NCBI GenBank assembly: GCA_002104945.1
Contig: MCFH01000001.1
Location: 2,418,001 to 2,482,000, forward strand
Source of the DNA: Piromyces finnis finn
Lineage: Eukaryota; Fungi; Neocallimastigomycota
Direction of reading: 5' to 3'
DNA length: 64,000 bases
Shown: piece by piece, positions 5,641-16,289 of the stretch
How positions within the stretch are numbered: position 1 is the first letter of the stretch
How the letters are laid out: each line of letters opens with the position of its first letter
The notes under the pieces: model-generated
What the model saw: the letters and a program-made list of their open reading frames with translations, nothing else
Told to the model about the DNA's origin: nothing
Database searches by the model: none
Translations under genes and position numbers: made by a program

Positions 5641-8600
5641 ATGAGTCATATATTACCACCTACTCCAACGCTTGGTATACCCCAAAAAGTTACAGACGAC
5701 ATATTTTTAGTTGAAGATTTGAAAGAATTTTTAAAAAAAAGAGGGGAAAGTATTGATGATAATTATTTAGTATATATAAAAAATTTAAATAGTTTAAGAC
5801 ATGATATTGCAGGTGCAGGAAAAGATGAAATTGGTAAAAATTTATTACTTAAATATCTAAATGAAGTAAAATCATTTATAAAAAAATTTTTAAAAGGGTC
5901 AAAAATTGGAAATGTTAGATTTATATGGTATTGATTATTCATTAATATAATTTTAAATATGAACTTTATAATAATTATAATTTGGTCTTATTTATTTTTG
6001 CAATACTAATCTTTCTAGGTATGACGCATTTACAGAAGAAAAATATATTCGCTATTCCAGTAATTATGAAGTAGCGTGTGTAACCTTTAATTTAGCTGCT
6101 GTTATATCAAATATCGCCGCTCTTCAAAATAGAACAAATGATAATCAAAGAAATATAGCTAAAAATTATTTTCAAGTAGCAGCAGGATTATTTAAATCAA
6201 TAAATGGTATCTTACCAAATAATACATTGAAAGATATAGGGAAAAAATCAATTAATTGTTTAAATAAGTTAATGCTAGCACAAGCTCAAGAGTGTTGTTT
6301 AGAAGAATTATTTATTAAAATAAATAAAAATAACAACAATAATAATATTAATAATATTGAAGATGATAATTATAATTGCAATAATAATAATAATATATCT
6401 AAAATTGCATGTTATCTTGGAAATATTTATTATAGCATTTATAATGATATGATTAATCTTAAACCACAGTTTGATAGTACATGGACTACTTTAGTAGCTG
6501 TATATGTCATATTATTAATATATATACAAATAATAATATTTAATATTACTCATATACTATATTTATATTTTAATATAAAATTACTAATATATTAATAATA
6601 TTACTCTAAATAAATTTAAAGTTTAAAGGTGATTATTATTATTCAATTGCTTATTATTATAAATCCAAGAATTGTGAAAATGAAATTGAAAAATGTTATG
6701 GTTATTTAAAAAAAGCTGAAAAATTTAGCACTGAATCATATAGGATAGGAAAATTATTTAGAGATTCCTATCCTTCTTTTGATATTTTATTAAACAGTAC
6801 TACTTTAGCTTCCAATGCACCAATAAATCAAAAAATTATTTATTCCTCTTTGTATAATGTGTCAAAGATTTTTTTAGAAAACATTAGAAAATATAAAATA
6901 CATATTATTGATATTACTAGAAGTAAAAACATTTATTTAAACGACATTCCAAAAATTCTTGACGAACCCGAAAAAACCCGTGTAGTAAAAAATTTAAAAT
7001 ATGAAAAACTATATAATAATTATGAAAATAAACCAATAAAAAGTGAAAATGATTATTGTTTAAATGACAGTAAAATAAATGAAATACTCCCTAATGGTAA
7101 TTATCCTCTTTTAATTGCAGTTATTAATAATGATGTTAATATGGTGAATAAAATAATTGAATCGGCCAATTCAATTAAAAGAAACAATAATAATTTCAAA
7201 CTTAATATTAATGGAAAAAACAATAGTGGAGATTATCCATTATTATGTGCAGCTCAAAATAATAATACTGAAATAGTTCAGGCATTAATAAAATATGCTA
7301 CTGAATCTGGAACAAAATTAATGGTTAATTTAGAAGGAAGAAATGGATGGTATCCATTACTTTGGGCATGCTATAAATGTAATTCTAAAATAGTTAAATT
7401 ATTATTAAAATATGCAAATGAAAATAATATTGTTTTAAATATTATAAAAAAGAATAGCTATGGTAGTTATCCAATTCTTTTTGCAACCTATAACAGAAAA
7501 ACAGAAATACTAAAAAAGTTAATTAAATATGCAAATCAAAATGGTATTAAATTGGATATAACAAGTAAAAATAATGACGGACGTTACCCATTATTAAGAT
7601 CCATTTGTTACAATAATCTAGATACATTTTCAACATTATTAACCTATTCAGAAGATAATAATATCTATATAGATTTTAATCAAAGTAATAATGATGGTCA
7701 ATATCCTCTTTTATGGGCTGTTCATAGAAATAATACATATCTAGTTAATAAAATATTAAATTATAATTTTTCATATAATGAAAATAGTGACGATAAAATG
7801 ATGGATTATAATTATATTGTTAATAAAAATAACAATATATTAAATATTAACGCTAAAAATAAAAGTGGATGGTATCCTCTTTTAAGAGCTGTTGATAATG
7901 AAAATACAGAAATAATTAAATTATTAAGAGATTATTCATTTAGTCATAATATCAAATTAGAAATTAATGATAAAAATAAATTGGGGGATTATCCAATTTT
8001 AAAAGCTGTTAAAAAAGATAATATTTCCATAATTATGTTATTAATGTTATATTCAAGAAGAAAAGATATTACATTAACTATTAATGAAAAAAATGTAAAT
8101 GGTGATTATCCATTATTAACAGCTATTGAAGAAGGAAATAATGAAATTGTTAAATTATTAATGAAATATTCAAAAGAAAGAGGATATATTTTAAATTTAA
8201 ATGAAAAAAATAACGAAGGATGGTCTCCACTTTTATTAGCTATTAGAAATAATAATTTAGAGGCTGTTAAATTATTATTAAAATATAGCGATAAAAAAAT
8301 TAATAAAAATTATAATTTATTAAATTTTAATATTACAAATAATAATGGTGATTATCCATTATTGATGGCAATCAAAAAAAAGAATAGAGAAATTATTAAG
8401 GCATTAATTAAATATGCAGATGACAATAGAATTATGTTAAATATTAATAATTGTAATAAAAAAGGAGAATTTCCACTTATGAAGTTTATGGATGATGAAG
8501 GTGAAAAACGTATTTTTAATGAATTAGATGAATTAATGAAATATTTAATTAAAAATAATATAATCATTGACATTAATAAAGTTAGTAAGGGATATAATAA

Positions 8601-9267
8601 TGAAACCATATTAATATATGCAATTAAAAAAGGATTTAATCAGGTAGTTAAAATATTAATGAAATATTCACAGAAAATGAAAATTCCATTAAATTTTAAT
8701 CAAGGTAATAATAATCATGAAAAATCACCACTTGTATTAGCAATTAACAATAATAATGATAATGATAACATGGAAATAATTGAATTAATATTGAAATGTA
8801 ATAAAAATCAACATAATTATTATAGAATAATACCAGATAAATTAAACTTAAATTTAGTTTTGTATTTCAATGAAGAATATGTTTCAAATATTAATGATAG
8901 AATTATTAAAATGCTTAAAGCATATAGAAATTATATTAATTTTAATTTTAAAGAAAACAGTGAATTAAAAAATAAAATTTATAGTAATGATGAAAAAGAT
9001 AATATTAAAAATGATTATGAAATGGAAGATATTGAAGGAAGTAGTATATTAAATTTGAATCAAAATGAAGAGAATTCAAATTTAGAATCTGATTTTGAAA
9101 TTAGTGAAGACGAAGAATTATCAATTAACAGGAATTTAAATTTAAAAGGATTTCCTTTTAAAAAAAAAAAAGAAAGAAAGAATTTTCATTTAAAAAAGCA
9201 TTTAAATGGATTATCTTTTGAAAATATTAATGATAATAATTGTATAAATATTTTTGATAAAAATTAA
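5641..9267 (+). CDS. BRO1-domain / ankyrin-repeat fusion protein, copy A
   Basis: Exons 5641-5927, 6019-6499, 6622-9267 join in frame. BRO1 hallmarks: L.IP.K, LNSLR, F.WYDAF, YE.A.V.FN.AA, YFQ.AAG.F, LMLAQAQEC. Followed by more than ten ankyrin repeats (N.KN..G.YPLL.A) and an acidic tail. Confidence 0.85.
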
Positions 9268-15400: not shown

Positions 15401-16289
15401 AGGAGAATTTCCACTTATGAAGTTTATGGATGATGAAGGTGAAAAACGTATTTTTAATGAATTAGATGAATTAATGAAATATTTAATTAAAAATAATATA
15501 ATCATTGACATTAATAAAGTTAGTAAAGGATATAATAATGAAACCATATTAATATATGCAATTAAAAAAGGATTTAATCAGGTAGTTAAAATATTAATGA
15601 AATATTCACAGAAAATGAAAATTCCATTAAATTTTAATCAAGGTAATAATAATCATGAAAAATCACCACTTGTATTAGCAATTAACAATAATAATGATAA
15701 TGATAACATGGAAATAATTGAATTAATATTGAAATGTAATAAAAATCAACATAATTATTATAGAATAATACCAGATAAATTAAACTTAAATTTAGTTTTG
15801 TATTTCAATGAAGAATATGTTTCAAATATTAATGATAGAATTATTAAAATGCTTAAAGCATATAGAAATTATATTAATTTTAATTTTATAGAAAACAGTG
15901 AATTAAAAAATAAAATTTATAGTAATGATGAAAAAGATAATATTAAAAATGATTATGAAATGGAAGATATTGAAGGAAGTAGTATATTAAATTTGAATCA
16001 AAATGAAGAGAATTCAAATTTAGAATCTGATTTTGAAATTAGTGAAGACGAAGAATTATCAATTAACAGGAATTTAAATTTAAAAGGATTTCCTTTAAAT
16101 TTAAATCCAAATTCAAATTCTGTAGCTGATATAGATTCAGATACAGATACAAATTCTGTAGTTGATATAGATTCAGATACAGATACAAATTCTGTAGTTG
16201 ATATAGATTCAGATACAGATACAAATTCTGTAGTTGATTCAATATCCCATGAATTTATAGAAAATAGTTATGACGAGTTTGATGAATAA
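12431..16289 (+). CDS. BRO1-domain / ankyrin-repeat fusion protein, copy B (one frameshift as assembled)
   Basis: Exons 12431-12720, 12821-13256, 13366-16289 with the same intron positions as copy A. A6 at 15232-15237 versus A7 at 8293-8299 in copy A shifts the frame, so this is either a homopolymer error or a recent pseudogene. Confidence 0.8.
13465..13632 (+). repeat. Coding microsatellites (GATTGT)11 and (AAT)32
   Basis: In frame in exon 3 of BRO1-ANK copy B, encoding (Asp-Cys)11 then Asp-Ile-Asn32. Confidence 0.9.
16115..16238 (+). repeat. 36-bp coding tandem repeat, about 3.4 copies (NSVVDIDSDTDT)
   Basis: Units start at 16115, 16151, 16187 and 16223; absent from copy A. Confidence 0.9.

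Follow-up and report, generated by a model that had tools for sequence, protein, structure and literature searches.

BRO1 domains serve cells, and many viruses, as the usual means of recruiting ESCRT-III. In the known architectures the domain either stands alone or is combined with a V, phosphatase or PDZ domain, and in ALIX, BROX, HD-PTP and Bro1 it holds the C-terminal helix of CHMP4/Snf7 in a hydrophobic pocket. ALIX and yeast Bro1 combine BRO1 with a V domain and a proline-rich region, while BROX, HD-PTP and the rhophilins already show BRO1 used as a portable module at the N-terminus, with another C-terminal partner or without one. None of these last three carries ankyrin repeats, unlike the two genes described here, g1 and g2, which lie in a 64-kb window, the whole stretch of Piromyces finnis DNA that was analysed. 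Ankyrin families are reported to be expanded in Neocallimastigomycota, the anaerobic gut fungi (PMC8778642). Our preferred reading, which we hold to be moderately probable, is that the two genes belong to a lineage-restricted family of ALIX-derived BRO1-ankyrin adaptors with an altered CHMP4/Snf7 pocket.

Gene structure of the tandem pair

The genes g1 (5641-9267) and g2 (12431-16289) are tandem three-exon genes, both on the plus strand. Exon 1 of g1 (5641..5927) encodes the BRO1 N-terminus in 95 codons plus two nucleotides of a split Trp codon, with a GT donor at 5928. Exon 2 (6019..6499) encodes the BRO1 core with the Surface 1 (CHMP4-site) helices, and contains a poly-Asn insert at 6323-6395, detected by TRF. 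Exon 3 (6622-9267) opens with about 136 codons (6622..7030) assigned by hhalign to the C-terminal third of BRO1, continues in the same frame into 14 ankyrin repeats, each 39 residues long (7069..8992), and closes with an acidic/basic tail and stop codon (8993..9267), where disorder is predicted (pLDDT <40, residues 791-881). In g2, Pfam places the BRO1 N-terminus in exon 1 (12431..12720) and the core in exon 2 (12821..13256); exon 3 (13366..16289) holds the BRO1 C-terminus, then the ankyrin array, then the tail, and includes an in-frame microsatellite encoding (Asp-Cys)n and poly-Asn (13464-13633) and a 36-nt repeat in 3.5 copies (16114-16238). Between the two genes, and part of neither, lies a degenerate, frame-broken copy belonging to a dispersed multicopy family (10212..12164, plus strand).

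The introns measure 91, 122, 100 and 109 nt, all four with GT..AG boundaries, and have a GC content of 7–15% against 20–27% in the exons. The junctions 6499/6622 and 13256/13366, named in the original prediction from the sequence, proved exact, each bounding a GT..AG intron. The proposal that the paralogs have conserved intron positions also held, both positions being common to g1 and g2. The same two positions occur in the intact metagenome copies described below (m1 and m2) and in the canonical ALIX-like gene of the host on contig C164. The BRO1 end and the 14 ankyrin repeats lie in a single open exon, and thus the predicted fusion of BRO1 to ankyrin repeats is real and a merged gene model is ruled out. 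The chance of an 881-codon open frame at the local base composition is about 1e-38.

As assembled, the g2 frame ends at a stop at 15259-15261, owing to a 1-nt deletion that leaves an A6 run (15232..15237, plus strand) in place of the A7 run of g1 (8293-8299). This is the sole indel whose length is not a multiple of three within a tract near-identical to g1, and it may be a PacBio homopolymer error. By blastn and sliding-window identity, the tract at 7580..9079 of g1 (plus strand) is 97–100% identical to about 14519-16017 of g2, unlike the BRO1 halves, which are only about 72% identical. From this pattern of identity, we attribute the near-identical stretch of about 1.5 kb to gene conversion or a very recent copy.

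The BRO1 domain and the ankyrin array

Against the Pfam BRO1 profile (PF03097, curated cut-off 35.1 bits), exon 1 aligns to profile positions 1-87 with 30.1 bits (E 3e-07) in g1 and 34.2 bits (E 1.7e-08) in g2, and exon 2 to positions 90-244 with 101.1 and 88.1 bits, respectively, passing the cut-off. Among PDB chains, exon 2 of g1 matches those of HD-PTP and ALIX, with HD-PTP as the best solved-structure match by sequence. The C-terminal third of the domain was missed by Pfam and recovered by profile-profile comparison: the N-termini of four exon 3 sequences (g1, g2, m1 and m2) aligned by hhalign to columns 239-373 of canonical ALIX proteins with a probability of 98.5% and an E value of 2e-15. 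The BRO1 domain of g1 and g2 is, by these alignments, complete, as it is in ALIX and Bro1, and extends from exon 1 through exon 2 into exon 3, where it takes up the first 136 or so codons.

What follows the domain differs from ALIX and Bro1. The V domain (PF13949, ALIX_LYPXL_bnd), present in nine of the nine closest full-length BRO1 proteins, gave no Pfam match in exon 3 of g1, g2, m1 or m2, and no proline-rich tail was found in g1 or g2; both absences had been anticipated. In their place stand the 14 ankyrin repeats. Exon 3 of g1 matches Ank_2 with an E value of 8.5e-55, and spacing of the repeat motif gives a period of 39 residues, versus the usual 33. An AlphaFold2 model of g1 exon 3 shows 14 helix pairs, with residues 150–790 mostly at pLDDT 84–96.

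The original prediction cast the array as a variable repeat scaffold, and here it did not stand. The 14 repeats of P. finnis and those of the metagenome fungus are orthologous one-to-one, position by position, the exception being m2, where about 1.5 repeats are inserted; dN/dS in the repeats is about 0.4–0.5. Within a gene the repeats are only about 71% alike; TRF finds just a 117-nt period, in three copies with 71% match. Because the repeats match one-for-one between species, a hypervariable scaffold in the manner of NLRs is ruled out. Fungal NLR-like receptors with ankyrin, WD40 or TPR arrays likewise place an N-terminal module before C-terminal repeats and likewise duplicate in tandem. However, Pfam scans of all exons returned BRO1 and ankyrin families only, bearing out the expected absence of NACHT/NB-ARC, and the repeats show neither near-identity inside one gene nor variability from species to species. 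We therefore reject NLR/STAND membership.

Ancestry, occurrence and selection

Gut-metagenome contigs of a second anaerobic fungus share this architecture and both intron positions. The genes there stand in tandem; two are intact (m1 and m2) and one (m0) is a pseudogene with at least three frameshifts. The fusion lies inside one open exon in four genes of two organisms. One explanation for such a set would be decaying ALIX duplicates without function that became joined to an ankyrin gene by accident; another would be an artefact of assembly or annotation. The frameshifts in g2 and m0 would fit such a reading, as would the lack of a corresponding protein in the libraries searched. Yet three intact copies retain open exons of 817–881 codons in DNA of about 20% GC (P about 1e-35 to 1e-38 each), splice sites are conserved among the family copies, every segment has a between-species dN/dS below 1, and the structure recurs in independent assemblies from many samples. 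We regard decay or artefact as very improbable.

Searches of protein collections agree with the original prediction of a lineage-specific architecture, in that no protein with both BRO1 and ankyrin repeats was found in large libraries. A HMMER search with g2 exon 2 against 1.84 billion representatives returned 134 BRO1 proteins, all at 48% identity or less; phmmer with the ankyrin array of the family found no ankyrin in any of them, and all nine that were scanned had the ALIX architecture. Whole exon 3 matched only ankyrin proteins (24–47% identity), none with PF03097. In the ESM Atlas, clusters were either ankyrin-only or BRO1-only, and a profile built from four exon 2 sequences found close matches among metagenome exon fragments only. 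A word-based protein search with residues 1–160 of exon 3, covering the BRO1 C-terminus and linker, returned no match, even of the gene itself. Among the metagenome contigs, a search for related loci confirmed nothing, and comparison with the window revealed no synteny, the flanking genes being members of large families. A pattern spanning the splice junctions had no match in these contigs, which is uninformative since the collection may contain no transcripts. Prokaryote-style gene calling had cut the gene into pieces on these contigs; exon-aware re-annotation would recover genes of this kind, for which the libraries searched hold no matching full-length protein.

To place the family, we computed a tree from exon 2 and dN/dS exon by exon. 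The BRO1-ankyrin genes fall into a single clade (SH-aLRT 100) on a stem of 0.96 substitutions per site, and this clade groups with the ALIX genes of anaerobic fungi (SH-aLRT 97), the host ALIX-like gene thus belonging to the nearest clade. Together with the common intron positions, the tree places the origin of the family within the ALIX clade, as judged from sequence. Exon 2 is 51% identical between the family and the ALIX-like gene on C164. P. finnis and Pecoramyces share 88.7% identity in exon 2 of canonical ALIX; in exon 2 of the BRO1-ankyrin genes, P. finnis shares 55–62% with the metagenome fungus. This suggests much faster evolution of the BRO1-ankyrin genes, although the species distances may differ.

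Between species, dN/dS was 0.27–0.34 in exon 2, 0.40–0.49 in the BRO1 C-terminus and 0.36–0.52 in the ankyrin array, values that are approximate since dS (0.65–1.2) is near saturation. For m1 and m2, which are recent paralogs, exon 2 gave 0.96, from only about 44 substitutions. The family as a whole is shown to be under moderate purifying selection.

The CHMP4/Snf7-binding surfaces and the proposed role of the family

The original prediction named recruitment of ESCRT-III as one possible role, and this was not supported. By alignment to human ALIX, a comparison that rests on two or three residues beside an indel-prone loop, the equivalents of F199 are C, H, C and Y in the four copies, and those of I212 are N, E, R and R; the host ALIX-like gene on C164 has F and L. 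At the sequence level, the exposed hydrophobic Surface 1 of ALIX is not conserved at these two positions, with a polar or charged residue at a key position of the pocket in every copy. In ALIX, F199D and I212D abolish CHMP4 binding (PMC4772496, PMC3907061, PMC3602193), and the counterpart mutation in BROX is L212D (PMC3230590). BROX and HD-PTP, unlike the BRO1-ankyrin proteins, keep a hydrophobic pocket (PMC3230590; Leu/Leu/Ile in HD-PTP by alignment). Surface 2 (Ile-Tyr, ALIX 318-319) is retained in g1 only. Given the changed F199 and I212 equivalents, ALIX-style recruitment of Snf7 is doubtful.

Some features would nevertheless suit an alternative form of ALIX, in which BRO1 binds Snf7/ESCRT-III canonically and the ankyrin array, standing in for the V domain and the proline-rich region, is a targeting module, so that ESCRT-III would be delivered to a lineage-specific cargo or site. 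This is in essence what the original prediction proposed. The domain is complete and under purifying selection, strongest in the exon that bears Surface 1 (dN/dS about 0.3), and the helix motif LMLAQAQEC is invariant. Position 216, L216 presumably being a key CHMP4-binding residue of ALIX, is hydrophobic in all four copies (I, V, V and I). The Tyr at 199 in m2 is also found in the host BRO1 gene on C209, and the second canonical gene of the host (C180) has Thr at 212, indicating some tolerance, since position 212 is then not strictly hydrophobic in presumed Snf7 binders. Against this, the residues at 212 are chemically like the inactivating I212D, none of the copies has Phe at 199, and the stem branch is long. 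On balance we consider canonical binding unlikely; the BRO1 half has most likely lost recruitment of Snf7 in the ALIX manner and gained a different or weaker ligand.

A role in conflict would account for a fast-evolving BRO1 on a long stem, for the birth and death of tandem copies, as seen in the pseudogene and the gene conversion, for the m1-m2 ratio in exon 2 and for the narrow phyletic range. BRO1 would then mimic ALIX as bait for an ALIX-hijacking virus or bacterial effector, with the ankyrin half signalling or sequestering, as in integrated decoys or fungal NLR-like receptors. But neither NACHT/NB-ARC nor any other signalling domain came up in the scans, the repeats lack both hypervariability and high mutual similarity, the m1-m2 ratio stems from few substitutions, and neither known ALIX interaction surface is preserved, making the BRO1 half poor bait. 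Although a decoy or defence role is possible, we think a sensor or decoy of this kind improbable. The broader idea of an ALIX-derived guard or decoy against mycoviruses or bacterial effectors, or of an ESCRT-independent use of BRO1 with a new ligand, seems to us equally improbable; were it true, the ankyrin solenoid would couple recognition to response in a host-parasite conflict of the gut ecosystem.

We favour instead the adaptor model. Duplication of the anaerobic-fungal ALIX/Bro1 gene gave rise to a small lineage-restricted family; the duplicate retained BRO1 in full, together with both introns, while a fixed array of 14 ankyrin repeats took the place of all that follows BRO1, the V domain and proline-rich tail. 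The family evolves by birth and death in tandem, with intact copies, a clear pseudogene in the other species and a gene-conversion tract in P. finnis. In the resulting protein, the conserved ankyrin solenoid may grip one particular partner, and the BRO1 'banana' may offer a second interaction or membrane-proximal surface.

The closest relatives of the array are ankyrin proteins of anaerobic fungi that carry HECT, ubiquitin, SH3 or MATH modules (30–49% identical). None of these matches has BRO1, and in those scanned the other module is C-terminal to the array, whereas BRO1 is N-terminal in g1 and g2. BRO1-ankyrin fits the theme of an ankyrin adaptor plus a trafficking or ubiquitin module in these fungi. 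By its sequence, it is a new, lineage-restricted domain-architecture variant of the BRO1 family with a putative function. What is new here is the array in a second fungus, the clade placement, the dN/dS values, the repeat orthology, the altered F199 and I212 equivalents and the lack of any BRO1-ankyrin protein in the large libraries searched. With the BRO1 fold kept, the rear half exchanged for a fixed ankyrin solenoid and the CHMP4 pocket changed, the family is a natural experiment on other uses of BRO1, and it brings a module of the endosomal pathway into the ankyrin expansion of anaerobic gut fungi, which is little understood.

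A tandem pair of BRO1–ankyrin genes

The two genes, g1 and g2, are arranged head to tail, both on the + strand, in a region of about 20% GC. The g1 exons span 5641–5927, 6019–6499 and 6622–9267, and those of g2 span 12431–12720, 12821–13256 and 13366–16289. All four introns (91, 122, 100 and 109 nt) are bounded by GT and AG, with a GC content of 7–15% versus 20–27% in exons. Exon 1 of both genes matches positions 1–87 of the Pfam BRO1 profile, and exon 2 matches positions 90–244, scoring 101 bits in g1 and 88 bits in g2 (Pfam cut-off 35.1). As sole query, the start of exon 3 gave no Pfam match for the last third of BRO1; a profile of four exon 3 N-termini, compared with canonical ALIX-type proteins in hhalign, aligned to columns 239–373 (probability 98.5%, E = 2e-15), indicating that the BRO1 domain is complete. 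Exon 3 then continues into ankyrin repeats without an intervening stop (Ank_2, E = 8.5e-55), in an open frame of 881 codons with a chance probability of ~1e-38 at local composition. Since a single exon holds both the BRO1 end and the ankyrin array, a merger of two gene models is ruled out, and with the same architecture found in a second organism, the fusion is real. Neither a V domain nor a proline-rich tail is present, in line with the original observation.

Searches, trees, rates and the fold model each used single exons rather than the joined spliced protein. AlphaFold2 on g1 exon 3 alone gave 14 helix-pair repeats (residues 150–790, mostly pLDDT 84–96) and a disordered tail at residues 791–881; the isolated BRO1 fragment came out unmodelled, as expected. 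The repeats have a period of 39 residues. Low-complexity inserts, all in frame, occupy different BRO1 loops depending on the copy: a poly-Asn run in g1 exon 2 (6323–6395), 11.7 units of GATTGT encoding Asp-Cys repeats and then 34 Asn codons in g2 exon 3 (13464–13633), and a Lys/Glu-rich repeat of ~70 residues in exon 2 of m1, a copy from a metagenome fungus (L018, ~1460–1700). Large insertions in its loops seem to be compatible with the BRO1 fold.

The BRO1 halves of g1 and g2 share ~72% DNA identity; at the amino-acid level, exon 2 is more alike (65% identity) than exon 1 (44%) or the BRO1 C-terminus (42%). Identity reaches 85% at 7280–7579 and 97–100% at ~7580–9079 (g1 coordinates), a climb that suggests gene conversion or else very recent copying of the ankyrin half. 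Beyond ~9162 (g1) and ~16099 (g2) the C-terminal tails diverge again, and the g2 tail carries 3.5 units of a 36-nt repeat absent from g1 (16114–16238; 98% identity), encoding an acidic 12-residue repeat. The sole 1-nt deletion of g2 in the near-identical tract (A6 at 15232–15237 versus A7 at 8293–8299 in g1) shifts the frame into a stop at 15259–15261; 3′ of it, only two differences occur in 278 codons. Because the published assembly is PacBio-only (56.46 Mb, 232 contigs; PMC5622200 Table 2), we rate a homopolymer error and a very young pseudogene as equally likely.

Directly downstream of g1 is a 93-residue ORF whose N-terminus is hydrophobic and signal-like (9377–9658, − strand), and between the genes lies a coding-like stretch of ~2 kb (10212–12164, + strand), split over several frames; neither has a Pfam match. 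Parts of the latter recur at dozens of places genome-wide with 65–77% identity, marking it as a decayed dispersed multicopy element or gene family.

Distribution and origin of the family

No protein combining PF03097 with ankyrin repeats was found among exon 3 relatives in a library of 5.8 billion proteins, among 134 BRO1 relatives of exon 2 in 1.84 billion representatives, in a profile search or among Atlas clusters. Piromyces sp. E2, Neocallimastix lanati and Pecoramyces are present in the protein libraries, with only ALIX-type or ankyrin-only matches. The proposal that the architecture is lineage-specific and undescribed is thus upheld by these searches, although absence from annotation is weak evidence, since the P. 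finnis protein models were likewise absent from the returned matches.

The best exon 2 match among the representatives was P0033, a 154-residue metagenome fragment (48% identity). Its contigs (L018–L027), from several JGI and ENA gut metagenomes with GC ~20%, hold a tandem array of BRO1–ankyrin genes. In each of two copies, m1 and m2, a pair of BRO1 exons with introns positioned as in g1 and g2 precedes a third exon, which stays open for 817 or 825 codons from the acceptor, covers the BRO1 C-terminus and leads on into ankyrin repeats. A third copy upstream, m0 (L024, 9417–13178), is a true pseudogene, with at least three frameshifts identical in four independent assemblies. Also upstream of the array are two genes rich in chitin-binding (PF00187) repeats (L024, 1836–6171). 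The flanking genes of these contigs show no synteny with the window.

BRO1 matches occur at four loci in the P. finnis genome: the window pair and contigs C164, C180 and C209. The C164 gene is ALIX-like: its BRO1 is followed by a V-like region and a very long tail rich in Gln and Pro. Interruptions fall at the two BRO1 profile positions used in g1 and g2, so the conservation of intron positions originally observed extends across g1, g2, m1, m2 and C164; in exon 2, C164 and g1 share 51% identity. A retroelement-like ORF (L015, 33–1592) adjoins the C164 gene. The C180 gene (L017) combines a V-like region with a short tail rich in Pro and Tyr, and C209 (L016) encodes a shorter BRO1 protein.

Maximum-likelihood analysis of the exon 2 region (75 rows, 141 columns) united the four BRO1–ankyrin sequences in one clade (SH-aLRT 100; stem 0.96 substitutions per site), which joins the anaerobic-fungal ALIX pair of C164 and Pecoramyces P0034 (SH-aLRT 97). 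This grouping shows that the family arose by duplication of ALIX, either inside the anaerobic fungi or at their base. Because m1 groups with m2 as its sister (SH-aLRT 99), each lineage either made its tandem copies independently or homogenised them.

The Snf7-binding surface

ALIX carrying F199D or I212D no longer binds CHMP4 paralogs (PMC4772496; PMC3907061); the equivalent BROX mutation, L212D, has the same effect, and this Surface 1 is described as conserved in ALIX, BROX and HD-PTP (PMC3230590). Alignment of the C164 exon with ALIX structures places F199 at the first Phe of 'EVFF' and I212 at the first Ile of 'DAIIAKLA', the latter confirmed by the I212D primer (PMC3602193). Residues 199, 212 and 216 are Phe, Leu and Ile in C164, Tyr, Ile and Val in C209, and Phe, Thr and Leu in C180. 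The corresponding residues are Cys, Asn and Ile in g1, His, Glu and Val in g2, Cys, Arg and Val in m1, and Tyr, Arg and Ile in m2. The nearby (K)LMLAQAQEC core motif and Lys215 are invariant and anchor the register; an indel-prone loop adjoins these positions. The Surface 2 pair (ALIX Ile318-Tyr319) is retained in g1 only. We therefore conclude with moderate confidence, at the level of sequence, that the canonical Snf7 groove may be lost or retargeted in the BRO1–ankyrin copies; Thr212 in C180 indicates some natural tolerance there. With 199 and 212 altered in all four, the ESCRT-III recruitment originally proposed is doubtful by the ALIX mechanism.

A constant ankyrin array

Between species, Nei-Gojobori dN/dS, taken exon by exon, was 0.66–0.73 in exon 1, 0.30–0.34 in exon 2, 0.40–0.49 in the BRO1 C-terminus and 0.36–0.52 in the ankyrin array, values that are approximate because dS is 0.57–1.18. 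For the young m1–m2 pair, exon 2 gave 0.96, a value drawn from few changes. For canonical ALIX, exon 2 identity is 88.7% in the P. finnis–Pecoramyces comparison, versus 55–62% for BRO1–ankyrin between P. finnis and the metagenome fungus, which suggests that BRO1–ankyrin evolves faster, though species distances may differ.

The scaffold had been predicted to be variable, which proved wrong. Repeat signatures (for example GWYPLLWA, GSYP-LFA, GRYPLLR-, SGWYPLLRA, LGDYPILKA and GWSPLLLA) follow the same order in g1, g2, m1 and m2, and the arrays differ only by a few lineage-specific indels, namely a loop of 18 residues in P. finnis and ~1.5 inserted repeats in m2. Repeats inside one gene are only ~71% alike. 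A hypervariable array of the NLR type is rejected on these grounds; the array is a fixed solenoid, presumably with a constant ligand.

The closest arrays are 30–49% identical and form part of the expanded ankyrin repertoire of anaerobic fungi (PMC8778642). Within the window, a further ankyrin-repeat gene (~47645–48814, − strand; C1:2465645–2466814) is 38–40% identical to the g1 array and lies within a 692-residue open frame. Gene by gene, related anaerobic-fungal arrays carry HECT, ubiquitin, SH3 or MATH modules. BRO1–ankyrin adds a new architecture to the BRO1 family, one of moderate interest pending a partner or phenotype, and fits a pattern of ankyrin adaptors wired to ubiquitin or endosomal machinery.
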